This document shows positions 2,384 through 27,712 of a stretch of DNA of 27,712 bases, one piece after another. Below the pieces are notes generated by a model that was not told where the DNA came from, searched no databases, and saw only the letters and a program-made list of their open reading frames with translations. The stretch is from Anthoceros angustus. Taxonomy: Eukaryota; Plantae; Anthocerotophyta. The translations under genes and the position numbers were made by a program. Location: NCBI GenBank assembly GCA_010909165.1, contig VJWM01000376.1, positions 1 through 27,712 on the forward strand. Reading direction: 5' to 3'. How positions within the stretch are numbered: the first letter of the stretch is position 1; each line of letters starts with the position of its first letter.

Positions 2384-4064
2384 ACAATGCCTCGCTAAAA
2401 GGGTTTCTCCGCTGTGGTTTTGAAAAATCCCAACCCTATTTCACGGAACCGTTGGTTTGGTTTTTTGTTGGTTTTGTAGGTGTTCATCCATCGGCATTCT
2501 CCGCACCACTTCTCGAGTCATTTACACCGCTACGCCTTATACTCGTTCATGGCGATTTAGTTTGGTGTGATGAAGGGCTGACCTCATTGTTCCATAATTT
2601 CGCCATGTCCGTAGTTTCGCATTTGTGTGGTTTTGTATGTTTGTATATACCAGAGGGCCTAGGCGCGCGTGTGCGCCTAAACAACGCTTATGTGCAAACT
2701 TGTGCATGCAAAAAAAGAACGCGAAAAATGATCTTCTAATGGGGAAGCATGTCCTTTTGGCTCGAGGATGCCGAACTCCCGAGCAAAATAACAAGTAGCG
2801 TACATCGTGGAGGTTCACCTAGACCACTTTATATACCTATCCTATGCCCTAATGCGCGTTTAAGAACACCCTATCCCTTTTATTCCTGACGGTGTTTGCC
2901 TCTTTCGTGACCTAGTACCGGGTTATCATCAAACATGCGGGGCCACTGGGTGAACAAGTGCATGCACCAAGGGGCCGGTGTGCATATTGACCACGGGCAA
3001 GGGACTGGGTGCACACGTGGGGCAAGGAGGGCGGCGCGCACCAGGAGCGCACCGAGGAGCCGGTGTGCGACTTGTGCGCGCACTGGAGCAATGCCTGGTG
3101 CCGCTGCACTGTGGCAGGATGCCCAGTGCGCTGCATCAGCGCTGCACCGGGCAAGGAGGCGCAAGTGTGCACACAAGTGCACGCACCAAGGTCAAGACCG
3201 AGAGCATGAACCCAAATGGTTCATGCCTCCTAGTGCATTCTGACGGTTCATCCAAAGAAAAAAGAGCAAAACTTCTTAAAAATCCTAAAACATCTTAAAA
3301 ATTACAAAAATTCCAGTTTTTGAGGCAAGTGCAGCATTGGGCACAAGATTTGCTCTAAAATTTTGACAAATTTTGCATTTTGTATTTTTTGATATTTTTG
3401 TTTTAAAGGGTTCCTTTCGACGCTTTTCAACCTTTTTGTGCAGCACCCTAGTGTGGATATGTTCTTATCTTTATTTAACCTCATCTTTTTCTAGTAGTTA
3501 AAACTTTGAACTAGTAGTGAGAACCTTTTGCATCTTTTGAATCTTGAGGCGTTTGGCGTGGGCCCGACTCTAAGTCGGACCATGCCACTCTCATTCTCGC
3601 ACTAGGCGTGGATCAAGAGCATCGAGGCCAAAGAAGATATTATTGTCCCAATGTCTAAGGAACAAAGTCCTGTAAAATTCTCGGGCGAGTATAGTCATAG
3701 GATTGACTAGTATGAATGAAAGGTAGGTGCGCAAACAAGTTTGCGGACTGAATTGACAAGCCCTAAAAACTCTAAATGTTTGTATCGTCCAACACATGAT
3801 TGCGGATGTTGGAGCTGTTAGATGTCGCATAAGTTTCTTGTGTGCAATTCGGTTGAAAAAAGCGAGCGAGAATGGGACTTTAGGTTTGCCACGTGCTTGC
3901 AATCTCTCAAATAACGTGTATCAAAACAATTATTCAAAAGGTTGGGTAACATGTATATGAGAAATATCAAAAGCGATTATAGTGCGGATTTTCAAGTGCA
4001 AAAAGGGGTCCAAGTCAGTGTGCAAAAAGGGGTTTCGGGAGAAACCCTTCTAACAGAGCATTGT
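2384..4064. mobile_element. Non-autonomous TIR element (~1.68 kb), superfamily unassigned
   Basis: Left end acaatgcctcgctaaaagggtttctcc matches the reverse complement of the right end, acaatgctctgttagaagggtttctcc, at 22/27 (all mismatches are transitions). The two flanks rejoin into the sequence seen uninterrupted in copy 1 at ~760-810. No transposase was seen. Confidence 0.7.
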
Positions 4065-5649
4065 TGTCAGCCGATGGTTCCTATGTTTCCGCAGACAAGA
4101 AGCGAGGATTATTTGTCCGACCACTTGCTGCTATTCCTCCATGAAGTGGTCAAGGGGCGATTGGGGATGAATCCTCTTGACAAGTTGTGTGAAGAGAGGT
4201 TGAAATTTCTCCTCGACCTCTCTAATTTCACCATTTGGTCCATCTTATGTGCATGCTAACGCGGAGGTGGAAATTGTGGCCTCCCTTCATGTGGAAGCCG
4301 GTTAGGGAGGTGAAATGGAAGGCGGAGGAGCCCAAGGAGGAAATCGAGGAAAATCGGATAGCTGGGAGTCCGTGGCGGCAGGCGATTCGAGAGAAGGAAA
4401 TTTCTACCGGCAAAGAGGAAGACCGGGGTGGAAGGCAGCCTCGTGAAAAGGTGAAAGCGGGCCACGCGTCACCAGCAGGCGCGCTAAAATGAAATAAGGC
4501 CAAGATTGAGGTGGCGGAAGAGAGGCGCGATCCAGGAGGACAATTTTTGCGACTGGATGCGGATGATGAATCAACCCGGAGGGTTTAGGGTGACCTCGTG
4601 GCGGACCTCCTCGATGGGAAGAGATTTTCAAGGGGACTCCACTGCAACAGAGGTGGATGCAACCAATTGGTGAGGGTGCGCACCTTGCCGGGAAGGAAAG
4701 TTCTCGATGAGGATGGCGTCTCAGGGCCGCCACAAAGTGGGATTTGCAGTGAGCCGACCACATCGATGATCCGCCCAAGCGATTTGTTGGATCAAGCGGC
4801 TTTAGCTCTCACCGCAGCAAGGGCGACGGAGGAAGTGGTGAAGGCCAGTTTGACGAAGAGGAGGCCAAGCGCAAGCAACCGGAGGAAGACAAGCGGTCCT
4901 AGAGGAAATAAGGGCCAAGATCTGTGAAGATTTGTGTGGCCTGTGAGAAGTTGCAGCGACGAGTACAGGAAGCGCCATGGCTCAAATTAAGGATGCCCAC
5001 GAGACGAACCAGGAGATGCAGGGGAGTTGTTATGAGCCCAGAGCAGGAGGCGGCCTCGTGGAGAAGGCCCATGAAGTCGCGAGTGGTATAAACGGAGCGG
5101 ATGAGGCACGTGGTCGAGCCGTAAAGGACAAAGGGAAGGGAAGCGAGGGTGACCACGACGGTAGTGGAAGGAACTAACGAAGGAAGCAAGAACCGAGGTA
5201 GTCAAACACCTACCGTGGTTGCCGAAGTGATCGTGGAGTCCACTACCGCAGTGGAAGTCGCACCGACATTGGCGCGCCAACTCGGGCGGCCATGAGCGGA
5301 GCAGACGCGACGCTGCACCCGCGAGGACATGGACCAGGCAACCAGGTGTAGCCTACGGGAGGAGGGGGTAAGCACCTCAGCTACAGCAGGAGGTCCCATT
5401 ATGTTGCGGCACATGGATGAGGAAACTTATGTTCCTGGTCTATATGTGAATGGGGAACGCGTGCTTAACTTCACTGTCCATGTGCGTGTGGAAATAGGAG
5501 GGATCAGGGCCTACCTACTGCAAGTGAGGACTCGAAGTGCATACTTCTACCACTGCGCCCGAGTGTGGGGGTTGGCCCCCTATTATGCGGAGGCGACTTT
5601 GGAGGAGTTAAGTGAGGAGGTCCAGGCTTGGGTGGACGAGGAACCGTAA
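4065..5649 (+). mobile_element. Retroelement ORF1/gag-like region, copy 2, 3' part, with stops and frameshifts
   Basis: 4065-4911 is an inverted homologue of 1-780 (PMFPQTRSEDYLSDHLLLFLHEVVKG..LDKLCEERLKFLLDLS; REVKWKAEEPKEE). The broken frame continues to a terminal open piece at 5329-5649. No RT motif was found. Confidence 0.5.
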
Positions 5650-6907
5650 TAATCCTCAAGAATACAAGCTAAGACGCTAAGCTCCAGGCAGGTACACCTC
5701 AAATTAGGACGCCCAAGAAGGATGTGAGGTGGAAGTATTGTGGGAAAACCTGGCTGACTGGGCCGGCAAGGAGAGCTCTGGCGTGGAGGACAAGGCGGTG
5801 GCCAAGTCGAGGGAGGGCGCGCAGATAGCGAGGGGCGGATAGGTGATAGCATCCAAGGATAGATTTGGTTAGGATGTCGACTAGACCTAGGAACAAGTGT
5901 GCCCCTTCGATAACCATCGAGGACCTAAAATCATGCCTGTATAAGAGGGGCGGATTATGCCTCCCAGCAGAGACGTTGAGATCCCCACGCCTGTGGCTGG
6001 TTGGAGACGCCCAATAGGAGGTGGTGTAGACGCCCTAGGAATGGTCGAGAGCTTGCTCCGGGAGGAGGAAGGGCGATCGGGGCCTTGGCCGACAAAGGGA
6101 AGGAACTAAGGGATTGGGCGGGTCCGAGCGCTCGTAACGCCGTGACGCCTGGGCTCCTTCTCGCTTCTTTCCTCGTTGTTTCAATTGAGGTCCGTGTGGA
6201 GTGAGTGGATGCCTGAAGGGCGAATCGAGAGAGAGGGAGAGAAGGAGTGAGAGCAGATCGGGGAGAGATTAAATAGTCAGATGGCGCGAGGTGCTGAATC
6301 GTGAGTAGGGAAGGAAGAGAAAAACGCGTGGAGAGGTCATGGTCGAAATTGTTGTGTAAGGATCGAATTGAGTGCCGTCTCAAGGAAGTGCACGGGGAAC
6401 GTTGTTTCGGAGGAAATAAGGTGGTGTGGCGCCTCGTGTGTGTGTGTGCATGTGTGGATTGAAGGTAGAGGCCTAGGAATCCCGGTCGAATCCGCGGCTG
6501 GGGTAGAATATCACCCAGACTACGGGTGGAGACAACCCCGTATCGGAAAATCCGTGGCGCCGAATCAGTCGCTAGGGTTTGGTGGGACCCACCTCGGCGT
6601 TCGTTCCACTACCCGGTAGTGGTGCGGCTACCGCGGTAGTAGAACGGGAGACGAGGTTGGGGAGTTAGATCCGTGGTAGTTGGACAAGACGGGAGGTAGT
6701 AGTAGTTGAGTAGATAGGTGTGAGGTGGTAGCAGGTAAGACCTGACTTAGCTAGGCGAAGGTCGGTAGTGATAGAAGATAGCGTCTCTTGGCACAAAACA
6801 TTCCCTTGGGAGCGAATCCCAGGACTACAACGACAATGAGGGTGAATGTGGACCTCACTGTATCTCATGATACGAGATTCCACTCCACATGAACTCGGGC
6901 GGATGAA
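5650..6907 (+). repeat. LTR-like sequence, diverged direct repeat of ~7815-8960
   Basis: Shared blocks in the same order: gtataa(g/a)ggggc TATA-like box, gttgagatcccc, ggtcgagagcttgctccg, gtggtagttggacaag, ggtagtagtagttgagtagatagg, attcccttgggagcgaatcc, gagggtgaatgt, ttccactccaca, ggatgaa. Confidence 0.7.
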
Positions 6908-7253
6908 GCTCAGCGCCAACATTGAATCGTTCGGATCACTCAGGTAACGGTAACTTGGCTGCTCTCTCCAGCTTGATTCGGAGATCCTCGCTATGTTCCG
7001 GAGATACTGGAGCTGTTTTTGGGGCACACACATCCACCACCCGATGCCTCACGCCCAGAGCAATCTCACCACGCCTGTGGAGTATCCGTCCGCCGGCGCT
7101 CGCTCTCGCAGACGATCGCTTGCCTCCAATACCTTAGCAGCAGGAAGATCGCGATTGCCAGGGTGCACAAATTCACGGCAAGCACGATTGTCCCCACCAT
7201 CTCCACAGTCTTGCCAAACAACTCCTGTTACTACATTAACCAGCGACGTGGTT

Positions 7254-7260
7254 AAGGGGG
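7254..7260 (+). other. Polypurine tract preceding an LTR
   Basis: aaggggg is followed immediately by TGTGTCAAAC, the canonical PPT-TG junction. Confidence 0.55.
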
Positions 7261-8963
7261 TGTGTCAAACCCTCTAGGGTTGACCCGCGAGGCTTGTTTA
7301 TATAACCACGGCCACAGGTTAATTGTTCAGGGTTTGTCTACCGAAAGGTCTGTAAACGATCTGGTATTTGGAAACTCCTTGTTGGATTGTGTCTTTGGGT
7401 GATTTTTTGCTTTTTTTGCTAAGTTTGGTGTCAAGAAGAGCTAGGTTGTCAGTAGGAAGGAATATTTATACTAGAAAGTGTCCTTGGCCTATGAGTTTTG
7501 GGTTGTTTTCTGGGTTGGATAATAATCGGTCCTTGGACTATGAACTTGGTACTCCTTGGCCTTCGGTCTTGGAATATTTAATAAAAAGCCTATATAAGGG
7601 AAAGGGGGTCCTCATATTTAGCAGAGGAAATCAAGTCCATAGGCTAGTTGTTGAACCAGCTAGGGCGGTAGTTGAAATTAGTGTGTGGTCATTGACCGGG
7701 GTGTGTGGTGGCTATGTTCCGAAGGCGGTAGAGGAACTGGAAGGGCGGTCGCTGGAGGAAGAAGTGGTAGCGGAAGCCGGTTGGCGGTCGTGGAAGAGGA
7801 AGAGTTCCAGGGGGAATATAACCCTAAGGGAACTCGGAAAGGCTAAGGGCGCAGGTAGCAGTGGAAGCGAGGCGGAGATTTTATGGGAGGATACCAGACC
7901 AGCGACGAGGAAGAAGGGCCCATGGATTCGGCAGCACAGGACGAAGGGCCAGGCGACCAGATCGGAGGAGGGCGTGGAGATAACGTAGGCAAGGAGTAGT
8001 GGCATCCTAGGAATAGAACTTTGGATAGGATTAGGTAGGATGCCATCTTGGACCTAAGGCCGTCCGAAATTGTAGGGGCGTCTCTTCGCGTTCAGCCGGT
8101 TTTAGGACCTATTAACTCTGGCGGGCTATGACGCCCCCATCCGTTGTATAAAGGGGCTTGGTTGTGCCCCTCGCATCAGATAATTCCTGGTTGAGATCCC
8201 CACGCTGCCTGTGGTTGGTTGGAGACGGCGGATCGACGGAGGCGGTGTGCGCGAGACGCTCCTAGGGGTGGTCGAGAGCTTGCTCCGCAACCGGTGAGGG
8301 AAGGGTGATAGAGCGTTGCTCGCTAACAATGGAGGAGGAAATTGAGGGATTGGCGCAGGGCGGGTCTGGAGCGTGCTGTCGGTGGAAGTGTGCACAAGAG
8401 GAAATAGAGCTCCATTGGGGGAATCGTGTGAGTGTGGTGCCCTTTGTGTCTGTGTGAAAGCGGGTGTGAGGGATCCGAGGGACTTTGGTCCCTAGAAATC
8501 GGTGTGTGCATGGAGTGTGGAGTGCAAAATAAAGTCTGATCTGTGAGCAGTGGTAGCCCTTCGTGGTAGGAATCCGCGGCACCGCGCGCCAGAAATAAGT
8601 TGCTAGGGTTTGGCGTAGGACCCACCCCGGTTGCCGTAGCAACTACCCGGTAGTGATGAGAGCCACCGTGGTAGTAGGTGGGGAACGGGAGTTGTGGAAT
8701 AAGATCTGTGGTCGGGAAATAAGATCTGTGGTAGTTGGACAAGTTGGGAGGTAGTAGTAGTTGAGTAGATAGGTAAGAGGAGTGATAGCAGGTAAGTCCT
8801 GACTTAGGCGAAGGTCAGTAGCGATAGAAGTTAGTGTTCCTTGGCACAAACCATTCCCTTGGGAGCGAATCCTAGGCCTACAACGACGTTGAGGGTGAAT
8901 GTAGACCTCATGGTGTCTCTAGACAAAAGTTTCCACTCCACAAGGTCACTTAGAGGATGAACA
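7261..8963 (+). mobile_element. Long (~1.7 kb) LTR, probably the 3' LTR of a non-autonomous Gypsy-type element
   Basis: Starts TG right after the PPT and ends GGATGAACA at 8963, where homology to 5650-6907 also ends. It contains TATA-like boxes near 7590 and 8145. Confidence 0.55.
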
Positions 8964-9898
8964 CTTTTGTACATAAGACATTCTCTTGATCTTATTAACT
9001 ACTACTTATTTTACATATCAAGTTTGTTCTTGTCTGCTCTTCCTAGTAACTCTAGAAGATTGACACACGAGGGAGGTCGGCATGCTCGAATACTGGGATG
9101 ATTTTCAAATTTTTCCAAACCACCAAGGGGATGGTACCTAATTTTCATATCCGTGATATGTTCCTAAACCCCATCACATGTACTAACGCTTGCGTTTCTA
9201 CAATTGACACCGCTCTGTTTATTGTTGATGAGCATTGTGCAAAGGTGTTATGCCCTTTGCCATCATGGTGGGCCATTCTTTGCGGATGAAAGAAAAGAGG
9301 ATGAAAGAGGTGGTCAATTTTCAACTCCTATGTCATTGGGCTATGGTGTACAAGGTTGAGGCTCATGTTTTGTTTAAGGCTAGCCCCAGTATCATTTGGC
9401 AGCAGATGCTTCTTTCTAGGGAAGCTTCGTAGGCATGCTAGCCTATGCCAGTTTAACTTAAGATTCCCAAGGGTCCATTTCCCTGAAATGAGCCCTAGAT
9501 GGTTTTAGGATTCTTTTCTTATGTAAAAGGTTTTTGAATATTTGAGAAAAATTAAGAGCAACAGCCCCAAGTGAGCCCATTTGATATAGTGGCTCATTTT
9601 GATATGTTCACAACTATTAGTGTCAAAGAATCTCTGTAGAAGAAGAAGAAGAAGAATTTTATTTTAGTCCACTAAGGACGGATTTCCGTCATGGGAGTGA
9701 AATATGATAACTACATAGATTGCGGTAAACTGGTCTGGATGAATGTAAAGGTAAAATTCAAACAAGACAAATAATCTTCAATCAATCAACAATGTCAATG
9801 AAATTGCGTGAAAGAGGGCCAAACACCACCAATTCATCCCCACGAAAGAAAGCCACTTGACCTGCAGCACGAGATGCTCTGAAAGTAGGTAACTTCAA

Positions 9899-10797
9899 AA
9901 AACCCTTATCAACGGAACCACAAGAAATGAGAAGACCAACTAGGAGGTTCCACACGCACCAAAAACCATCAACACACCTCTCCCTTTCTTTAATCCCAAA
10001 TTCCCCAGCCCACTCATATTGAGTCTCTAATTCTCTTTTTTTCCTTTTTCTCTCAAATTTTTGATGTATGAAATTCTAGAAAATATGCCCCTTGTTGCAG
10101 CTTTTTGAGGTCTATTTTGTGATGCTAGTTTTACATAGATTTTGTCATAAATTATACATCACCCTCTAAGAATCCTTAGCCTTCTTTAACATTTCATCGG
10201 GTTTACCAAACAGACCGTGGTTCGCAAAGTTACGATCCTGGGCTCTCCCGCCATCTACGTCCCACATCCTAGCCCGGCTGTAGTGGAGGCGCCCGTTTTT
10301 TGAGGTGGTGCACGAGGAGTTTAGCATGCGCTAGGAGTTCCTTTTTGTTCACGCAGAAAGCCCATTTGTCGAATATCGAGATTTCTTGATTCATTGTCCC
10401 CCACCTCTATATAAGTTTCTCCGTCTCCAGGTTCTCTCCTCCCCCTTCTCCATACTTCTATTATACAGATGATAGTGATACTAGGGTGAGTCAGTACTAC
10501 TAGAGGCATTTCCCTATGCTGCATAGGGCACGCTAGTTTTCCAAGTGCGTGTAATAAACTTCATGCATCTATCTGCTGCGGAGCGGCCATCTAGTTCTAG
10601 TTGTTGCGCCAGTGAGATAGGCTGTTTGAGAAACTTTGTGAATACCCGTAACCCATTTTTTAATTGGCAAGGTAGATGGCCTTTGTTTTGAGTTCAAAGT
10701 TTTTGTCTCCATTTGCTCCATTGTGTTACTAAGTATAGAATGCAAAAAAGTGGATGGAGAAAACCAAGAGGAAAAGGCATGGTGGGAAAGAAACTCC
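9899..10797 (+). repeat. Segment Y (~0.9 kb), present inverted at 24241-25138
   Basis: Reverse-complement match throughout, e.g. cactcatattgagtctct / agagactcaatatgagtg and ggtgggaaagaaactcc / ggagtttctttcccacc. Confidence 0.9.
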
Positions 10798-10809
10798 TAC
10801 TCCTATAAG

Positions 10810-11003
10810 CTAGAGGTCCATGTGGTCGTTCCTCGAGCCTTCTGGCTTGGAAAGGATCCTAGTAGGGAGCGCATATTGATTATGACTTTTCATTCTATGT
10901 ATGATCGCCTCCAGGTTATGAAGGCTACGTCTATGTTACGGATAACTCAGTTATATATCAATGAGGATCTTACACCATTGCAATGGAAGACTAAGAAGGA
11001 GAC
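10810..11003 (+). mobile_element. LINE ORF1 fragment (RRM / Transposase_22-like C-terminal part)
   Basis: AFWLGKDPSRERILIMTFHSMYDRLQVMKATSMLRITQLYINEDLTPLQ fits the RLGK..RPI.V.F....R..V.....L....I.I.EDLT pattern of LINE ORF1 proteins. Confidence 0.55.
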
Positions 11004-12614
11004 TTGTACATTCATAGGCCATGGTTCCTAGTAGGTTCCAAATTTGGTATTGGCGGATTTTGGCTTTGTGGCGGTGTCCTTGTGATGATTTGGAGGTTTT
11101 TGGTTTTCGATCACTGGCGGGGGCTTTTGGCTCGATTCTGGCTCTTCTGCTGGTGTTCTGCGGTAATCGATGATGGTGCCCGAGTCTGAGGTTAATTTTG
11201 TCTACAAGTTACATTTGGTATGAGGGGTTTGTTTTGCTCCTCGCTTGGCAAGGGAGGCTATTTTGATCTATGGAGGATGAGGTTCGGCTTCTCTTAGTAT
11301 CATTTTTTTCTCAATTTGCGGTTTCAAAATAAAGCGTGATTTTTTTCACAAAATAAAAACCATGCTCCCGCTTAACGGATGAGTCCACCCCAATACCTAT
11401 TAGAACTCACGATGTCTCATTTGAGGAAGCCAATGTGCCTTTTCCAAGAGGCACTTATGTAGTTATTTGGGTTTCTTCCTTCTAGCGAGGAAATTGCAAG
11501 ATATATATTAATACATATTTATTTATAGATCATTAGGCGATGCAGCCATGAGGCTATGATGCCTCTATTTACATTTTTTTTCACCAGCAATGCTTGCAGT
11601 AGATTTTTCAAATTCCTAATTCTAATATTATAATAGCGAAAGAGGTTTTGGTCCTATGGAGCTTGTTGTGGTGTATATTAATACATATAGACCACAATAA
11701 GTGCATTTAAAACCCTACAATTTGGAAAGTCTACATTTTAGATAAGCCTATGGAGGTAGTTCTAGATGGAACATACATCCAAGATAAAGTCGCCAAGTTG
11801 AAGAGATGTGGCAAAACATTAAAACAAGGTCCTCATTTCAAGACACTATCACCAAGTCATTCAAATACCTTGATGGAGCTAGCCCTAAATGGAACACATA
11901 CCCAAAGACGAAGGCCCCTTAACAATCATCAAGTATTTATGATAACCTTGTGGAGTTTGCTCGAGAAAACAAACGCTCAAGCACGCTTCCTTGAAGAGAG
12001 TAGGTTCCCATTATAACATTGTACCACCAAGTATGTCAAATCACCTTGTGGAGTGTGACCGAGAGGAACATATGCACAAGTACAAAGTCCTTGAAGAAAC
12101 TAGGTCAAATACCTACAATCAAACTTGGGTAGGTACCCATCCATTATTCTTCCGTTGACGTGAAGAGTCAAGGGTATCAAATTTGAGGTTGGTATATTAT
12201 CCTAGCATTATTCTAAAATGTCGAGATAAGAAAGGTAATTTCAAAGAAAAATAGAAGTGTAGGAGAGGGGACAATGTGTGTGGGGGGTAACTAGTGGAGA
12301 AAGTGATTGGGAGCAGAGAGTATGGGGTGCAAGAAGAAAAGAAAAGGAAGGAGGGACAAGATTTATGAGTAAAAGGAAATATTATAAAATAGAAATAGAT
12401 TGAAAAAATAAAACATAAAATATGGAAAAGAGTGAAAAGATAGAAGATAAAAAGAAAAAAGAAAAAGTGAAGAAGATATCAAACAAAAAATTTGAATACC
12501 TAGTTGAAATCTTCTTTGATATTATGTATTGAAGAAGAATAAAGTCATTGAATTTAGGTAACATGGATCGACAAGAAAAAGATTGTATATCGAGAAATAA
12601 ATGAGTTTGTTCTC

Positions 12615-12915
12615 TATATATGTACAAGTCCTCTCATCACAATTTCACATATTTGACTGCACTTGCTATCTCGTGAGTTATTCTCTTATTAGGTACATTT
12701 GTTTAGGTTTGATTGTAGTAGATTTGCTTAGGTTTGATTGTAGTAGATTTGCTTAGGTTTGATTGTGATATTGCTCTTAGATTTGCTTAGATGTGATTGT
12801 AATTTTGGTCTTAGACTTGTTGTGCATTGAAATGGGTAGAGTATTGGCGAAGATCTTTTGTATAGAAAATGTAATCGATTGCTTGATGTTGCTTGGTTTT
12901 GTGTAGCTAGAGAAA
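12615..12915 (+). promoter_or_regulatory. Putative TATA box and intron-containing 5' UTR of the peptide-precursor gene
   Basis: TATATAT at 12615-12621, GTGAGT donor at 12673 (alternative GTACAT at 12693), TGTGTAG acceptor ending 12906, then GAAAATGGCG start context. The same layout is present in copy B. Confidence 0.45.
12699..12803 (+). repeat. 25-bp tandem repeat, about 4 copies (ttgcttaggtttgattgtagtagat)
   Basis: Read directly from the sequence. The paralogue at ~26860-26945 has about 3 copies. Confidence 0.85.
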
Positions 12916-13521
12916 ATGGCGACATCTATGGGATTTGGACGATCTTTCCTTGCTATTTTCCTTGCTCTTCTACTCATGTTTCCAAGCATATTGCTAGGCG
13001 TACTTAGGGAGTCACTTGAACGTCAAGAGGATAGATATATTGATGACATATTGAGGGCTCCACGAAAACCGCCTAGTGGTCCTAGCCCAATGAGCCGTGG
13101 ATGCCTCCTCTAGATCCAAAGGTGATTGTTCGAGGAGACGAAGGCATCTTGAGGGCTCCTAGAAAACCACCTAGTGGTGCTAGCCACAGTAATGAGCCCG
13201 GGATGCCTCCTCTCGATGTAGAGAAAGTGACTGCTCAAGGAGACGACGCATCTTGAGGGCTCCAAGAAAACCACCTAGCGGTGCTAGCTCCGGCAATGAG
13301 CCGGGATGCCTCCTCTAGAGGCAAAGAAAGTAAGGGCACAAAGGCATCTTGAGAGCTCCAAGAAAACCACCTAGTGGTGCTAGCCACGGCAATGAGCCCG
13401 GGATGCCTCCTCTAGATCCAAGGTGACTCTTGAGGAGACGACGCATCTTGAGGGCTCCACGAAACCACCTAGCGGTGCTAGCCCTGGCAATGAGCCTGGG
13501 ATGCCTCCTCTAGATCCATAG
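12916..13521 (+). CDS. Secreted multi-module peptide-hormone precursor (CLE/IDA-like), 5 peptide repeats; frameshifted as assembled
   Basis: Signal peptide MATSMGFGRSFLAIFLALLLMFPSILLG, an acidic spacer, then five repeats (gag(g/a)gctcc at 13053, 13151, 13255, 13351, 13450) encoding ILRAPRKPPSG(P/A)S(P/H/S)xNEPGMPPL(D/E). It ends MPPLDP-TAG at 13521. Indels between modules break the frame, so the assembled ORF stops at 13113. Confidence 0.7.
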
Positions 13522-14326
13522 AGAGTCATTTTTCAACTTGTCGGTATTGAGTGTAGAAGTAATGGCTCATACAAGGCACAAGTGGGAATTATAATGTGCA
13601 TATGTCGTTCACCCTTGGACACCCTTTTTGTTGGGAAGGTGTGGTATTGAAACGGGGAGATATTTTCTTGTCGTATATTTATTGAAGAATTTAACTGAAC
13701 TTATTATGTTAACAATAAACAATAATTCGGATTTACTAACTATTGATCTTTTTGATGTCAATACGACATTAAAGGGAATGTGTTACTGACCCCATCATTT
13801 CACTCCGGGAACAAGGATGTGGAAATGCATGTCACACCATTTGGTCTACACCTGTGGCTTTAGCTGCATCTGATACGAAGACGATCCCCAGACTGATGGG
13901 CCCCATTGCATATAGCACGATCATTGCATATAGCACCAGCCCAAGTGAGAGGGATGGGAGAAAAGTGATAGCAAGCCTGTCTACACAGCACCAAGCAGCA
14001 GGTGGAATTGAAGGACAAGACTACCGCACCAGTGTGAATACGCAAGTTTACTGAGGAGTGGCAGAAATGGTCATGTGCAGCAACTTTCAGGCAGCATAAT
14101 CCCACAACTGAACACCCTCAGCAGAGCTGAGGCTTGGCAGGTAGCTGGAAACCAGTGAGCACTGCATCTTGCAGCATGATAGACCCGAGCTCGCGATGGA
14201 GAAAGAATTAGGACACAGGACTTAGAATATCTAGGAGATTGGAGACACAGGGTAGCCGCAAAAACCCCTTAGGTTGAAAGGTCCTCTCATGTTACAGCAC
14301 ATTGGTATGCCAAAAAATGAACCTAC

Positions 14327-15495
14327 CTAGCTCAGCACCGCGAGGACATCTGAAGCCCTCAGGACAACGTATTGGGTCCCATCCTTTCCTTTGAAGTCGT
14401 TTCCTGCATACTTGAGTACAAAACGCTGTTGCCAGAGGAGATCTGCAACGGCTTCCGCACACCGTCTTCACCGAGAGGTCCAGGCCCAGACGCTACAACC
14501 TGCTCACAATCGCAAAACAGAAACCAGATAGAATTCAGTTCAGCATCACAATTCCAATACCGGGCAGGTAGCTAGGGTTTTAGCTTACTCACGGTCCCAA
14601 TGACAGGCTTCTCCTTGGCACTGTCTGTGAGCAACACCCCGCCCGCTGTTTTGTCCTCTGCTTCTTGAATCTGACATCCGCAGAGGCGTGAGCGGGCCCC
14701 GAGCACAAAGATAGTGTAAAAGAGAAGATTCTGCTGATACATCACCTTAATGAGCACTCTGTCGTTCAGAGGCTGCAAATCCTTGATGTCATCAGTTTGC
14801 AGAAGCCCGACAATATCATCTTCCTTCAGCAAGAGGTGGTCTTCGCCGTTGAACTCCACCTCTGTTCCAGCGTACTTCGAGTACACAATGGAGTTACCGG
14901 TCTGCGCAGATAACGGATTATTCCCCCGGAAGCTACAGCCAACAGGTTTAAGGATATCCAAGCCAGCAGCAGCAGATTGACTGGGGATCCGAGTTCGGCT
15001 TAGGGCTGCACAAGCGAATGAATGGAATCCAACCTGAACGCTGAGTGCAACCTTTTTGTCGCCGAATGTCTTCCCGTCCCCGACGGCAACAACTTCGCCA
15101 CCTTGAGGCTTGGTCTGAGCAGTGGTCGGGAGAAGAATTCCGCCGCTTGTCTTCTCCTCAACAGTCTCGATCTTCACCAGAATACGGTCTCCCAGCGGCT
15201 TCAAGGTTTTGAACTGATGCAACAAAACAGATAGTGACAATCCTTCCGACACTGCAGAACACTCGAGATTGCCGCAGCTCGCCAATCAAGCAAAATTAGG
15301 TTTCTGTCGCCAAACCTTAGGCGCCACTGCAGTGGCGGCTCTGACGCACCCGCCGTTGCATCGTCGACGCAATGGAACCAGAGGCAGTTGAATGCGCACA
15401 GGTGTGGCCTGTCGCAAGCCCTCGAACGAGCTAATGCTCCAGGTTGCCGACGCCTGCAGAGGCGAGCGCAGCTGGGAACAGGCAGCCATCGACAT
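14327..15495 (-). CDS. CPN20: Chloroplast 20-kDa co-chaperonin (tandem cpn10/GroES domains). Exons 15495-15316, 15213-15034, 14901-14746, 14670-14593, 14499-14327; ~255 aa
   Basis: Transit peptide (SFEGLR...VRAATAVAPK), domain 1 KPLGDRILVK..KTSGGILLP..YSKYAGTEV, domain 2 QPLNDRVLIK..KTAGGVLL..GPGPLGEDG..YAGNDFKGKDG..VLRASDVLAVLS*. Four GT-AG phase-0 introns. One base is missing in exon 5 near 14413. Confidence 0.96.
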
Positions 15496-15570: not shown

Positions 15571-16110
15571 GAACTCAGTAGGGGTATTCCATCCTCACAC
15601 CATTTGCAGGGCAAACGGATATTATGTAAGTTTGTTGTAAGGAAATTGGAGAGAACTCAGTAGGGGTATTCCATCCTTACACCATTTGCAGGGCAAATGG
15701 ATATTATGTAAGTTTGTAGTAAGGAAAGAGGAGAGAACTTGGTAGGGGTATTCCATCTCACACCACCCTGCAAATGGATATTATGTAAGTTTGTAGTAAG
15801 GAAAGAAGAGAGAACTCAGTAGGGTATTCCATCCTCACACCACCTGCAAATGGATATTATGTAAGTTTGTAGTAAGGAAAGAGGAGAGAACTCGTAGGAG
15901 TATTCCATCCTCACACTATTTGCAGGGCAAACGGATATTATGTAATTTTGTAGTAAGGAAAGAGAACTCGGTAGGGGGTATTCCATCCTCATACCATTTG
16001 CAGGGCAAACGAATATTATGTAAGTTTGTAGTAAGGAAAGAGGAGAGAACTCAGTAGGGGTATTCCATCCTCACACCATTTGCAAGACAAATGGATATTA
16101 TGTAAGTTGT
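15571..16110. repeat. Minisatellite, about 7 units of 76-83 bp
   Basis: Units start gaact at 15571, 15653, 15735, 15812, 15888, 15964 and 16047. Consensus gaactcagtaggggtattccatcctcacaccatttgcagggcaaa(c/t)ggatattatgtaagtttgtagtaaggaaagaggaga. Confidence 0.95.
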
Positions 16111-16147
16111 AACAAAATGCAAAGGCGAGAGCAAGAGAGACTTCGCG

Positions 16148-16813: not shown

Positions 16814-17592
16814 TCATGGCTGATGCAAAGGGCAAGCCCTAAGTCCCATGGATTCCATGTGGAAATAGTGCTTGTGCTTGGGTAGGTGCTTAGTAAGGAG
16901 GTCCGCAATATTGTCATATGTAGAAACATACTGAATCTTCACAATCCTCCTTTCCACATAGTGTCGAACAAAGTGGTGATGTACCTCTATATGCTTGGTA
17001 CAAATGTGAAAACGCGGATTTGCGACCAAGGCTATAGTAGACATATTGTCGCAATAGATTGTGGTAGGGTTAGACTGCTTGAAACCTAAACCCAGGAGAA
17101 AACTTCTCTCCCATTCTGCTTCTTTTGCTGAGTCTGTCAGGGCCTTATATTCAGCCTTAGTAGAGGATAGTGCAAACAAACCCTTGCTTCTCAGAGCTCC
17201 AATAAACAGCTGCATGTGCCATGGTAAAGCAATAAGCAAATATACTACGACGTATCTCAGGGTCTGTGGCCCAATCTGCATCGGCATAACCACATAAGGT
17301 GAGAGCATCTTCACCTCCTTGAAAGCACAGGCCATATTTAACAGTCCCCTTTAAATATCTGAGAACTCTTATGACTGCTGCCATGCTCTCTGCCTGGATT
17401 TTTGTCAATGCCTTGTACCACTCCCTAGCACTCTGTTTAAGTGCATAAATTGTCTTCTTCAATCGACATACTCAATTTGGGTGTTCAGGGTCCAAAAAAC
17501 CTTCAGGCTTCTCCATGTAGATATCTTCTTTGAGTTTCCCATACAAGAATGCGGTATGGACATCCATTTGCTGTAGATCCCACGCATTTGCT
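16814..17592 (-). mobile_element. Ty1/Copia pol remnant (RT and RNase H), 5'-truncated and internally deleted
   Basis: WDLQQMDVHTAFLYGKLKEDIYMEKPEGF, LKKTIYALKQSAREWY, RVLRYLKGT, GYADADWA, SSTKAEYKAL, IYCDNMS, TKHIEV..HFVR, NIADLLTK. It contains a stop and a frameshift. Confidence 0.95.
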
Positions 17593-22590: not shown

Positions 22591-23081
22591 GTACCTATGG
22601 ATGGACTTTCGTTGGCGGACCAGCCATAACTATGTCCCATATCGCAAGCAAGATGCGTGATTCATCCCACAAATGTATCGCCGCACCGCCAACCTACTAT
22701 TTCTAACTACTTGGGAAGGGGTCCCATCTAGTCCGTACCAATACTAATGAACTTACCTGGCCACTGATCACAACTCGGTCCAATGACCGCGTCCACCAAG
22801 ATTGAGTATTCAATGGACCCCAACCGCCGGAGCTCTACTACACTTTACGAAGACGGACGCCTGGTCCTTCATCAGCGAGGCTGGCCAGACTTGCGTGATC
22901 CCGCGCTAAACCTCCTTATGTCAAGGGGAGAAATTCCATATAGTGCAAGGAATCGATCTCCGATCTTCAGAGGTGTTCTCCTAGGACGCTTAGAATCGTG
23001 CTACTATCTAAGAGTTTGATTCTATAGGGATTTTTCAACTCACTGCTTTGAGGTGATCAACACTTTTAGACCAGACTTGCT

Positions 23082-23666
23082 CAAAGACGAAGGCCCCTTA
23101 ACAATCATCAAGTATTTATGATAACCTTGTGGAGTTTGCTCGAGACGAAACAAACGCTCAGCGGCTTCCTTGAAGAGAGTAGGTTCCCATTATAACATTG
23201 TACCACCAAGTATGTCAAATCACCTTGTGGAGTGTGACCGAGAGGAACATATGCACAAGTACAAAGTCCTTGAAGAAACTAGGTCAAATACCTACAATCA
23301 AACTTGGGTGGTACCCATCCATTATTCTTCCGTTGACGTGAAGAGTCTGGTATCAAATTTGAGGTTGAGCGTTATTATCCTAGCATTATTCTAAAAATGT
23401 CGAGATAAGAAAGGTAATTTCAAAGAAAAATAGAAGTGTAGGAGAGGGGACAATGTGTGTGTTGGGGGGGTAACTAGTGGAGAAAGTGATTGGGAACGAG
23501 AGTATGGGGTGCAAGAAGAAAAGGAAGGAGGGACAAGATTTATGAGTAAAAGGAAATATTATAAAAATAGAAATAGATTGAAAAAATAAAACATAAAATA
23601 TGGAAAAGAGTGAAAAAGATAGAAGATAAAAAAAAAAAGAAAAAGTGAAGAAGATATCAAACAAAA
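23082..23666 (+). repeat. Partial third copy of segment Z (equivalent to 11903-12488 and ~26055-26645)
   Basis: Near-identical from caaagacgaaggcccc to gaagatatcaaacaaaa. Confidence 0.92.
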
Positions 23667-23962: not shown

Positions 23963-24179
23963 ATGGCAACATCTATGAGATTTGGATGATGTTTCCTTGC
24001 TAATTTTCTTGGTCTTCTACTCATGTTTCCGAGCATGCTACCGGGATATACTAGGAGTCACTTACCAAACATCAAGAGGATAGATATCGATAATAGCTAG
24101 CATCTATCTTGAGCTAGCTCCAAGAAAACCACCAAGTAGTGCTAGCCGTAATGAGCCCCGAGAAGCCTCCTCCATTTAG
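23963..24179 (+). pseudogene. Degenerate copy C of the peptide precursor, with one module
   Basis: MATSMRFG* (CGA to TGA), a decayed signal-peptide sequence, then APRKPPSSASRNEP. Confidence 0.75.
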
Positions 24180-24240
24180 AATATTTGAGAAAAATTAAGA
24201 GCAATTTCAAGTGAGCCCATTTGATATAAAGAATCCTATG

Positions 24241-25138
24241 GGAGTTTCTTTCCCACCATGCCTTTTCCTCTTGGTTTTCCATCCACCTTTTGATTTTTGT
24301 ACTTAGTACTTGACACGATGGAGCTAATGGAGACAAAACTTTGAACTCAAAACTAAGGCCATCTACCTTGCGCATTGAAAAAATGGGTTGGGGCATTCAC
24401 AAAGTTTCTCAAACAACCTATCTCACCGGGCGCAACAACTAGAACTAGATGGCCGCTCCGTGATAGATGCATGAAGTTTATTACACGCACTTGGGAAACT
24501 AGCCCTATGCAAGATAGGGAAATGCCTCTAGCAATACTAAGTCACCCTAGTATCACTATCATTTGTATAATACAAGTATGGAGAAGGGGAGCAGAGAACC
24601 CGGAGACGAGGAACTTATATAGAGGTGGGGGACGATGAATCGTCCGAGAGCACCGTGAACTTCGCTATTGGGAGCGTATGGTCGCTCCGCAGCTGAACAA
24701 AAAGGAACTCCTAGCGATGCCAAACTCCTCCTCAAAGACTCAAAAATGGGCGCCTCCGCTAAAGCCGGGCTAGGATGCGGATGTAGATGGCGAGAGACCC
24801 TAGGATCAGAATTAGCGAACCACGGTTCGCTTGGTAAACCCGATGACATGTTAAGGAAGGCCAAGGATTCTTAGAGGGTGATGTATAATCTATGACAAAA
24901 TCTATGTAAAAGTAGCATCACAAAATAGACCTCAAAAGTCAGCAATAAGGGGCATATTTTCTAGAATTTCATACATCAAAAATTTGAGAGAAAAAGGCAA
25001 AAAGAGAACTAGAGACTCAATATGAGTGAGCTGGGAATTTGGGGTTAAGGAAAGGGAGAGGTGTGCCGATGGTTTTGGTGCGTGTGGAACCTCCTAGTTA
25101 GTCTTCTCATTTCTTGTGGTTCCGTTGATAGGGGTTTT
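24241..25138 (-). repeat. Inverted copy of segment Y (9899-10797)
   Basis: Reverse-complement homology; it abuts the Z copy at 25139. Confidence 0.9.
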
Positions 25139-27212
25139 ACTTGTACACTCATAGGCCATGGTTCCTAGTAGGTTCCAAATTTGGTATTGGCGGATTTTGG
25201 CTTTGTGGCGGTGTCCTTGTGATGATTTGAGGTTTTGGTTTTCGATCACTGGCGACGGGCTTTTGGCGATTCTGCTCTTCCTTGCTCGGTTCTTGGTGCG
25301 GCAATCGGATGATGGTGAATTGGGGCCCGAGTCTGTGAGGTTAATTTTGTCTAAGTTACATTGGTATGAGGGGTTTGTTTTGCTCTCGCTTGGCAAGGGG
25401 AGGCGCTATTTTGATCTATGGAGGATGAGGTTTCCGCTTCTCTTAGTATCATTCGGTCTCAATTTGCGGTTTCAAAATAAAGCGTGATTTTTTCACAAAA
25501 TAAAACCATGCTCAAGCCGCTTAAAGGGATGAGTCCACCCCAATACCTATTAGAACTCACGATGTCTCATTCGAGGGAAGCCAATGTGCCTTTTCCAAGA
25601 GGCACTTATGTAGTTATTTGGGGTTTCTTCCTTCTAGCGAGTAATTGCAAGATATATATTAATACATATTTATTTATAGATCATTAGGCGTATGCAGCCA
25701 TGAGGCTATGATGCCTCTATTTACATTTTTTCACCAGCAATGCTTGCGCAGTAGATTTTTCAAATTCCTAATTCTAATATTATAAAAGGTAAAAGGTTTT
25801 GGTCCTATGGAGCTTGTTGTGGTGTATATTAATACATATAGACCACAATAAGTGCATTTAAAACCCTACAATTTGGAAAGTCTACATTTTAGATAAGCCT
25901 ATGGAGGTAGTTCTAGATGGAACATACATCCAAGATAAAGTGCCAAGTTGAAGAGATCAAGGCAAAACATTAAAACAAGGTCCTCATTTCAAGACACTAT
26001 CACCAAGTCATTCAAAATACCTTGATGGAGCTAGCCCTAAATGGAACACATACCCAAAGACGAAGGCCCCTTAACAATCATCAAGTATTTATGATAACCT
26101 TGTGAGTTTGCTCGAGACTTAAACAAACGCTCAAGCACGCGGCCTTGAAGAGAGTAGGTTCCCATTATAACATTGTACCACCAAGTATGTCAAATCACCT
26201 TGTGGAGTGTGACCGAGAGGGAACATACGCACAAGTAAAGTCCCCTTGAAGAAACTAGGTCAAATACCTACAATCAAACTTGGGTAGGTACCCATCCATT
26301 ATTCTTCGTTGACGTGAAGAGTCATGGTATCAAATTTGAGGTTGAGTGTTATTATCCTAGCATTATTCTAAAAATGTCGAGATAAGAAAGGTAATTTCAA
26401 AGAAAATAGAAGTGTAGGAGAGGGGACAATGTGTGTGTTGGGGTAACTAGTGGAGAAAAGTGATTGGGAACGAGAGAGTATGGGGTGCAAGAAGAAAAGA
26501 AAAAGGAAGGAGGGACAAGATTTATGAGTAAAAGGAAATATTATAAAATAGAAATAGATTGAAAAAATAAAACATAAAATATGGAAAAGAGTGAAAAAGA
26601 TAGAAGATAAAAAGAAAAGAAAAGTGAAGAAGATATCAAACAAAAATTGTCAATACCTAGTTGAAATCTTCTTTGATATTATGTATTGAAGAAGAATAAA
26701 GTCATTGAATTTAGGTAACATGGGATCGATAAGAAAAAGATTGTATATCGAGATATAAATGAGTTTGTTCTCTATATATGTACAAGTCCTCTCATCACAA
26801 TTTCACATATTTGACCGTGACTTGCTATCTCCCGTGAGTTACTCTTATTAGGTACATTTGTCGTTAGGTTTTGATTGTGCTCTTAGATTTGCTTAGGTTT
26901 TGATTGTGATATTGCTCTTAGATTTGCTTAGGTGTGATTGTAATTTTGGTCTTAGACTTGTTGTGCATTGAAATGGGTAGAGTATTGGCGAAGATCTTTT
27001 GTATAGAAAATGTAATCGATTGATGTTGCTTGGTTTGTGTAGCTAGAGAAAATGGCGACATCTATGGGATTTTGGACGATCTTCCTTGCTATTTTCCTTG
27101 CTCTTCTACTCATGTTTCCAAGCATATTGCTAGGCGATTAGGGAGTCCGAACGTCAAGAGGATAGATATTGATGACAAGATATTGAGGGCTCCACGAAAA
27201 CCGCTTAGTGGG
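25139..27212 (+). repeat. Second copy of segment Z (11002-13085)
   Basis: Direct homology up to the first peptide module. Confidence 0.92.
27052..27212 (+). pseudogene. Copy B of the peptide precursor, broken by indels and truncated in module 1
   Basis: MATSMGFWTIFLAIFLALLLMFPSILLGD*, then ..ILRAPRKPLSG before homology ends. Confidence 0.7.
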
Positions 27213-27572
27213 CCAATCATTGCCCTCGTTTTAGTGATGTTGTCATTTCAAGCCTGCACCTATAAAACAAATCCGGTTAAAACCCCACCACGCCCTGCTA
27301 CATTTATTGTGGTGGATGGCATGGGCAATATTCTTAAAAGACAGATTCTCGCTATTGGCCAACAGGTAAATTATACCCAAATTACCCGTGCATTTACGCC
27401 CAATCAACGCAAAATCTCCTTTATCGTTTTAACAGCATCCCGCCAAAATTATTATGTAGCTCCAGCCTATACCCTACATTCCCTAAAGGTACTTATTGCA
27501 TTTACAAAAAAAGTTTTGGTACTGGCAACACAGCAATGGACTATTTATTTAGACGAAACCTATTACCGATAA
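27213..27572 (+). CDS. Partial ORF in foreign-looking DNA, possibly a bacterial lipoprotein
   Basis: About 120 stop-free codons in AT-rich DNA beginning IIALVLVMLSFQAC (hydrophobic stretch plus lipobox-like FQA-C). No start codon for the putative signal is present before the junction. Confidence 0.35.
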   Translation, partial: PIIALVLVMLSFQACTYKTNPVKTPPRPATFIVVDGMGNILKRQILAIGQQVNYTQITRAFTPNQRKISFIVLTASRQNYYVAPAYTLHSLKVLIAFTKKVLVLATQQWTIYLDETYYR

Positions 27573-27577
27573 TATGC

Positions 27578-27608
27578 ATTGTTGCAATGAATAGCCATTT
27601 GCAACAAT
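27578..27608 (+). terminator. Stem-loop just after the stop codon of the foreign ORF
   Basis: attgttgcaa-(11 nt)-ttgcaacaat, a perfect 10-bp stem 5 nt after TAA. There is no U-tract, so terminator function is uncertain. Confidence 0.3.
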
Positions 27609-27712
27609 CAGGAAAAATTTAACAGCCCTTATGATGCTTAAAATAAATAATTGTTTAATTTTAAAATCGTTGTGAACATCGTTTAAAAGCAGTAATTTTA
27701 AGAACAACTATC

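Follow-up and report, generated by a model that had tools for sequence, protein, structure and literature searches.

A locally duplicated array of proline-rich modules in Anthoceros angustus, possibly encoding a secreted pre-pro-protein

A five-module array and its surroundings

The stretch of DNA analysed here (the window) is a 27,712 nt contig from Anthoceros angustus that carries plant nuclear DNA and transposon debris. On its plus strand, between positions 12916 and 13521, a start codon and a classic signal peptide are followed by five tandem units of approximately 98 bp (Table 1), and the gene for CPN20 lies directly downstream on the opposite strand. From position 13048 onward, each unit contains a 24-codon core that reads ILRAPRKPPSG(P/A)S..NEP(G/W)MPPL(D/E). 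The five cores carry the sequences RKPPSGPSP, RKPPSGASHSNE, RKPPSGASSGNE, RKPPSGASHGNE and (R)KPPSGASPGNE, and their tails read PGMPPL(D/E), with the variant PWMPPLD in module 1. The signal peptide, modules and tails quoted in the initial annotation are thus all present in the DNA, as is the direct reading RRRRILRAPR ahead of modules 3 and 5 (frame 1, at 13235-13264 and 13430-13459).

Three-frame translation yields a 65 aa open reading frame (ORF) at 12916-13113 whose N-terminus is MATSMGFGRSFLAIFLALLLMFPSILLG and whose stop codon, at 13111-13113, falls where it had been reported. The hydrophobic core of this N-terminus spans residues 10-29, with a mean Kyte-Doolittle hydropathy of 2.3-2.9, and a charged stretch comes next. 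Downstream, the spacers that separate the cores vary in both length and sequence, whereas the cores are constant.

Tandem Repeats Finder (TRF) describes the array either as 4.8 copies of a 98 bp period or as 2.4 copies of a 200 bp period. The 200 bp period scores slightly better, which indicates that the array expanded through duplication of units of two modules. A 21 nt core pattern matches five times in the array and once more, at 24126, in a second copy of the gene. The number expected from shuffled sequences is 0.00, and the array is therefore not a product of chance.

Table 1. Positions in the window of the array, its neighbouring copies and associated features.
Feature	Position	Strand	Basis and remarks
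Start codon and signal peptide, 28 aa	12916..12999	+	Translation; hydropathy (R9 in n-region, 18-residue hydrophobic core, charged stretch)
Acidic/basic pro-region VLRESLERQEDRYIDD	13000..13047	+	Translation
Module 1 core, ILRAPRKPPSGPSP / NEPWMPPLD	13048..13115	+	4 nt shorter than the others; break at ~13087/13088 by a CCC run
Spacer 1, 30 nt, PKVIVRGDEG	13116..13145	+	Sole junction in frame on both sides
Module 2 core, complete, ILRAPRKPPSGASHSNEPGMPPLD	13146..13217	+	Translation, core alignment
Spacer 2, 32 nt	13218..13249	+	Module 2 frame VEKVTAQGDDAS*; module 3 frame ..SRRRR; 1 nt short at GACGA.CGC, ~13246/13247
Module 3 core	13250..13320	+	1 nt deletion in the run CC(C)GGG, ~13302/13303
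Spacer 3, 25 nt	13321..13345	+	Out of frame, between the two indels of unit 3
Module 4 core, complete, ILRAPRKPPSGASHGNEPGMPPLD	13346..13417	+	Translation, core alignment
Spacer 4, 27 nt, P R * L L R R R R	13418..13444	+	In-frame TGA at 13424-13426; GACGA.CGC shortfall as in spacer 2
Module 5 core, then DP and TAG stop (13519-13521)	13445..13521	+	1 nt deletion in the run CGAAA(A)CC, ~13461/13462
TATATAT motif, possible core promoter	12615..12621	+	By eye; ~295 nt 5′ of the ATG; conserved in copy C
25 nt and 34 nt tandem repeats in the leader	12693..12819	+	TRF
AATAAA, possible polyadenylation signal	13714..13719	+	By eye; ~195 nt 3′ of the last stop
Copy B: signal-peptide exon and a single degenerate module (..APRKPPSSAS.NEP..)	23963..24187	+	Nonsense change at codon 9, CGA>TGA (23987-23989); further stops
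Copy C: leader, signal peptide and start of module 1	27052..27212	+	Many 1 nt indels; cut off at ~27212 by unrelated sequence
Upstream flank duplicated with the gene, ~1.9 kb	11000..12915	+	Copy C flank 25137-27051; copy B flank 23042-23666, partial
Chloroplast CPN20 co-chaperonin gene, two Cpn10 domains	14330-15285	-	Pfam E = 6.7e-35; PDB 7ekq Cpn20 E = 2.5e-38

The tandem repeats of the leader may lie inside a 5′ UTR intron, as judged from a splice-like donor motif (GTGAGT at ~12675) and an acceptor-like motif (..TGTAG at 12905). The copy number of the 25 nt and 34 nt repeats differs between copy A, the five-module array (12693-12819), and copy C (26860-26935).

The gene and approximately 1.9 kb of its upstream flank are present three times in the window, as copies A, B and C, and no copy within the window is intact. 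In its signal-peptide exon, copy B differs from copy A synonymously at five codons and non-synonymously at seven, and it is dead by a base substitution that converts CGA to TGA. Copy C breaks off at a shared CCAAT at ~27212. From there an ORF (27030-27572) continues into AT-rich sequence with a lipoprotein-like start (..LVLVMLSFQAC..). A Pfam search with this ORF gave no match, and the contig end beyond copy C (27213-27712) has the appearance of plant DNA joined chimerically to non-plant DNA.

Several further repeats surround the gene. Copies A and B lie in a segment flanked by an inverted repeat of ~800 bp (9899-10703 and 24335-25138), whose arms are 87-97% complementary in pieces. At copy C this repeat directly adjoins the duplicated flank, an arrangement suggestive of a mobile element or of a segmental duplication that has been rearranged. 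Just upstream of CPN20, a ~78 nt unit occurs in seven tandem copies (15578-16124). The regions 1-2000 and 4000-9000 form GC-rich blocks (51-57% GC versus 34-45% nearby), in which the GC skew is strong and both strands contain long stretches free of stops; Pfam gave no match for two ORFs taken from the 4000-9000 block. By eye, ORFs at 10723-11031 (plus strand) and 16814-17462 (minus strand) resemble the tail of a LINE ORF1 and of a copia-type polymerase, respectively, and Pfam is silent on 10723-11028 and 16817-17335 at E ≤ 0.01.

Coding constraint and frame breaks

The five cores were aligned by codon and their differences were counted for each of the six frames. The peptide frame has a pS of 0.249 and a pN of 0.043, giving a pN/pS ratio of 0.17, and contains no stop. 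For the other two plus-strand frames the ratios are 1.03 (9 stops) and 1.88 (17 stops), and the minus-strand frames range from 0.39 to 5.4. A minus-strand reading was rejected, as even its best frame (0.39) comes without a start or signal context. Third codon positions account for 10 of the 16 variable columns (binomial p = 0.016). A parsimony count gives 11 synonymous and 6 non-synonymous events (p = 4e-4 if ~24% of sites are synonymous, p = 0.003 if 30% are), and this selection signal is one of small numbers, namely 17 events among five related units. The non-synonymous changes cluster in two adjacent codons (H/S/P, then S/G), to which P/A, W/G and D/E changes are added. The cores evolved under protein-level constraint, and the module was still being maintained as protein once the units had diverged. 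Codon-level constraint, whose absence the initial annotation had named as grounds for abandoning its proposal, is thus present.

As assembled, the array has no single frame that is open from end to end. Module 1 is in the frame of the ATG, an uninterrupted stretch of 56 aa at 13086-13253 reads ..NEPWMPPLD-PKVIVRGDEG-ILRAPRKPPSGASHSNEPGMPPLD-VEKVTAQGDDAS*, and the deletion in module 3 is offset by a change in the 25 nt spacer 3. A five-module ORF of approximately 200 aa would need 5-7 single-base corrections in 606 nt, and a single correction in module 1 would give a 113 aa protein with two modules. The three breaks that are internal to cores (~13087/8, 13302/3 and 13461/2) are 1 nt deletions in or beside C or A runs, and for these the initial claim that the breaks fall mostly in homopolymers holds. 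It does not extend to the spacers, where the breaks comprise the GACGA.CGC shortfall, the altered length of the 25 nt spacer 3 and the in-frame TGA in spacer 4. Specifically, the GACGA.CGC shortfall, seen by comparison with GACGAAGGC at the junction of modules 1 and 2, is common to the junctions of modules 2 and 3 and of modules 4 and 5. Because both of these junctions precede the second module of a 200 bp unit, the shortfall was probably copied rather than generated by two chance events, and it is probably a real mutation or a systematic error instead of a random one.

The neighbouring CPN20 gene provides a useful calibration of assembly quality. At ~14413 it reads tactcaagtatgc where caaag is expected, and the conserved sequence GNSVLYS|KYAGNDFKG is split at this point. 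This 1 nt shortfall in an A run, which had been correctly described as a homopolymer break, splits a conserved exon and is most likely an assembly error. It represents one break in ~750 nt of CPN20 exons, and the rate of correction needed in the peptide gene is approximately 10 times higher.

The duplicated flanks are themselves noisy. Between copies A and C there are 27 substitutions and 73 gap events, 37 of which are at homopolymers. When ~590 nt of flank is compared among all three copies, private gap events number 7, 7 and 10 and private substitutions 5, 7 and 11 in copies A, B and C, respectively. Indels that are at least as frequent as substitutions make a non-biological ratio, which points to unpolished long-read noise in repeated DNA. 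For copy A, the indel noise in the flank is ~1.2%, near the 0.8-1.2% needed in the gene. A reasonable reconciliation would be that short-read polishing reached unique genes such as CPN20 but not multi-copy DNA.

These data permit the main alternatives to a functional coding array to be weighed. That the array is a non-coding minisatellite with an accidentally open frame is most improbable: the lack of a frame open across the whole array as assembled is what such DNA would exhibit, but substitutions are biased toward synonymous changes in a single frame, that same frame is free of stops within the cores, and an ATG and signal peptide lie directly 5′ in the frame of module 1. Far more weight, only a little short of an even chance, must be given to the possibility that copy A is a pseudogene in a decaying tandem family, with real frameshifts and a real stop in modules that once were coding. 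Its product would then be at most truncated, with 65 aa as assembled or 113 aa if the run error in module 1 is corrected. The end of the ORF at 13113, the shortfall common to two junctions related by the 200 bp duplication, the in-frame TGA at 13424-13426, and the single break in the CPN20 exons are all consistent with decay, as are the nonsense change in copy B and its neutral-looking proportion of synonymous to non-synonymous codon differences (5:7). However, the breaks in the cores carry the homopolymer-deletion signature of assembly error, the excess of indels in all three flank copies is not biological, and the cores still exhibit a pN/pS ratio of 0.17, such that any decay must be recent. 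We conclude that the failure of copy A to read through as assembled is probably due in part to assembly noise, and in part may reflect real decay. An intact copy A in the organism is possible but doubtful. The initial description of the gene as probably intact at ~200 aa is overstated given the 5-7 corrections, the shared shortfall and the dead sister copy.

Module junctions and comparison with known peptide families

The initial annotation also proposed that RRIL sequences ahead of the modules serve as cleavage sites for S1P. The sequence RRRRIL occurs at only two of the four junctions, and there it is read in a frame that is shifted from the preceding module (junction of modules 2 and 3) or stopped after it (junction of modules 4 and 5). 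At the junction of modules 1 and 2, which is continuous, the reading is RGDEG-ILRAPR. Likewise, the corresponding sites read DEGIL at that junction, HKGIL at the junction of modules 3 and 4, and DDIL in the pro-region. The bases AGGAGACGA give (R)GDE at the junction of modules 1 and 2 and would give RRRR one position off that frame. Furthermore, when the module 2 frame is followed into spacer 2, it gives VEKVTAQGDD (VEKVTAQGDDAS*), a clear homologue of the PKVIVRGDEG of spacer 1. This homology indicates that RRRR is a +1 reading of an ancestral GD(E/D), produced by the 1 nt shortfall, and is not itself ancestral. S1P is reported to cut RALF23 at INRRIL-ATRRY, and replacement of RRIL by GGIL to abolish the cut (PMC13082318); by this measure S1P would not be expected to cut at the ..EGIL and ..KGIL junctions. 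The case for a general S1P site, as read from these junctions, is weak, and the proposed role of RRIL is not supported.

The modules were also compared with the CLE and IDA peptides CLV3 (RTVPSGPDPLHH), MpCLE2 (KEVPNGPNPLHN), IDA (PIPPSAPSKRHN) and MpIDA1 (EVPPQGPSPIHN) (PMC8462819). Among the CLE motif positions, R1, P4 and G6 are found in all modules, P7 only in module 1, and P9 in modules 1 and 5. None of the five modules contains HN or HH, and positions 11-12 are N-E in modules 2-5. The IDA core PPSGPS is present in module 1 only, with modules 2-5 reading PPSGAS and so carrying Ala at the central Pro. The C-terminal (R)-H-N anchor that lies five residues past this Pro in IDA is absent from the modules. 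Their sole conserved Asn is four residues past the central Pro position, one residue nearer than in IDA, and leads into a conserved EPGMPPLD. The sequence GxGH, characteristic of PIP/PIPL and CEP, is absent from all frames of 12916-13521, and the 65 aa ORF as assembled would end with RKPPSGPSPMSRGCLL, which is not a known motif. Judged by the defining features of these families, the gene is not a member of CLE, IDA, PIP or CEP, and the suggested CLE/IDA affinity fails on the missing HN/HH and on a central Pro that is confined to module 1.

Individual likenesses to these families can nevertheless be listed beside the differences. Multi-CLE-domain precursors occur in some plants and in cyst nematodes, and the gene shares with them a layout of repeated motifs. 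Module 1 also has the CLE register R-x-x-P-S-G-P-x-P (R1, P4, S5, G6, P7 and P9 as in CLV3). Unlike CLE peptides, the modules lack H11 and N/H12, modules 2-5 lack P7 and N8, and the conserved unit is 24 residues long as opposed to 12-13. With IDA/IDL, for example Marchantia MpIDA1, the gene has in common a secreted pre-pro-peptide design and, in module 1, the core PP-x-GPSP, and both presumably rely on proline hydroxylation and subtilase processing. In contrast to the single motif near the C-terminus of IDA/IDL and CLE precursors of ~70-110 aa, the gene has five internal modules. It further differs from IDA/IDL by the absent His-Asn anchor, the Ala in modules 2-5 and the conserved NEPGMPPLD tail after the core, and no homology to that family is detectable by sequence search.

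Small secreted precursors, some of them multi-domain, with Gly/Pro/Ser-rich motifs are also typical of CEP and PIP/PIPL, the latter with an SGPS core, but the C-terminal GxGH of these families (PMC8462819) is absent here. CEP arose in seed plants (gymnosperms) and PIP/PIPL in angiosperms (PMC8462819). In its presumed way of working, the gene most resembles hydroxyproline-rich systemin (HypSys), which is listed among plant peptide families (PMC11756074). Both would be lineage-restricted, secreted multi-peptide precursors, although they share no sequence similarity and the repeats of the gene are near-identical. In HypSys, which is known from Solanaceae and Convolvulaceae, one secreted precursor gives rise to several Pro/Hyp-rich peptides of ~18-20 residues with PPS-type motifs, and these peptides are not near-identical repeats.

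Searches for relatives of the module were made with its separate stop-free pieces. Three such pieces matched nothing in Pfam at E values up to 1 other than a sub-threshold chance match to the signal peptide, a weak test for CLE and IDA as Pfam may hold no model of either. A word search with the 65 aa ORF among proteins of 36-114 aa gave no match. HMMER with the 56 aa piece (13086-13253) returned a single match (P0001, E = 4.4e-5) from 1.84 billion representatives. This 1155 aa repeat protein, built of ..GNGTQDGNEPNMPNVDVE.. units, was rejected as a chance match because it aligns only with GNEPGMPPLDVE, through eight repeats. The ESM Atlas gave no usable match to the module pieces. In metagenome DNA, a first scan with the core pattern gave 0 matches, and three matches from a second scan were rejected as unrelated GC-rich genes. 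A literature search located a single one of the module motif strings, PPSGPSP, which occurs in one paper on CLE and in another on IDA of tomato.

The earlier statement that the module fits no named family is in agreement with these Pfam and HMMER results. The best matches of CPN20 in the protein collection are 53-56% identical (streptophyte algae, ferns and mosses) and none is near-identical, which indicates that the species and its close kin are absent from the collection. In addition, gene callers often overlook small peptide genes. For both reasons, the finding that the module has no relative is weaker than it sounds. On the basis of the undetected relatives and the absent C-terminal His-Asn, we classify the gene as an orphan family rather than a CLE or IDA member.

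Possible nature of the gene product

The anatomy of the locus, coupled with the constraint on its cores, leads us to favour, with moderate confidence, a lineage-specific and locally duplicated plant gene family that encodes, or recently encoded, a small secreted Pro-rich pre-pro-protein. After a signal peptide and a short charged pro-region, the product would carry five modules of 24 residues, separated by variable charged spacers of 8-11 residues. Such a precursor is predicted to enter the secretory pathway, where hydroxylation, and perhaps arabinosylation, would be expected on the prolines of its KPPSG and GMPP motifs. Cleavage by subtilases in or beside the spacers could then release several near-identical peptides that would act outside the cell. 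A signal peptide followed by repeated conserved cores and variable spacers is the layout of polyprotein-type precursors, and we count the alternation of constant cores with variable spacers in favour of this reading. A polyprotein peptide precursor seems the most likely mode of action. If the family is now or was recently functional and secreted, there is about an even chance that its product is processed into several extracellular peptides in the style of HypSys or of multi-CLE/CEP precursors. From the original proposal that one precursor releases several peptides, the secreted multi-module architecture and the constraint on the cores are retained, and RRIL as the cleavage site is not. Points against a polyprotein hormone are that His or Asn is never the last residue of a module before its spacer and that the collections searched (1.84 billion representatives) contain no predicted protein with the module.

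Two other secreted products merit consideration. It is unlikely, though not negligibly so, that the gene encodes a structural or matrix Pro-rich repeat protein of the cell-wall or mucilage HRGP/PRP kind that acts whole and uncut. Such a protein would have a signal peptide and Pro-rich repeats with KPPS and MPP motifs as seen here. The usual plant peptide hormone has 12-15 residues, and the conserved 24-residue module, long for a CLE or IDA type, would be at home in a matrix protein, as would the missing terminal His/Asn anchor. Yet there are only five repeats, their conserved cores alternate with variable charged spacers as in pro-peptide precursors, canonical wall motifs such as SP3-5 or PPVYK are lacking, and the search of 1.84 billion proteins matched no HRGP or PRP. 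We consider it decidedly improbable that the gene is a divergent multi-copy member of IDA or CLE that is perceived by HSL- or CLV1-type receptors. The RKPPSGPSP of module 1 does have R1, P4, G6, P7 and P9 in common with CLE, and PP.GPSP in common with MpIDA1, but HN/HH is missing from every module, four of the five have Ala at the central Pro, the displaced Asn runs into the conserved EPGMPPLD, and no sequence search ties the module to any protein.

The polyprotein reading can be taken one step further, to a proposal that we regard as quite unlikely in its full form. A bryophyte-lineage tandem-array family might encode a polyprotein that yields several hydroxyproline-type peptides, derived from or convergent on the IDA/CLE core but without the His-Asn anchor. 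Because these peptides would lack the anchor, their receptor engagement would be unlike that of all known LRR-RK XI ligands.

Should every copy be broken, the array would represent an ordinary, short-lived orphan family, whose main value would be as a marker of the poor polishing of repeated DNA in this assembly. If at least one copy is intact and expressed, it would constitute a peptide family not previously described, organised as a polyprotein and present in a non-seed plant. Here an IDA/CLE-like PPSG core would work, in nature, although it lacks the His-Asn anchor by which ligand binding is defined in the known receptor clade, and this would bear on the origin and diversification of peptide ligands in early-diverging land plants.
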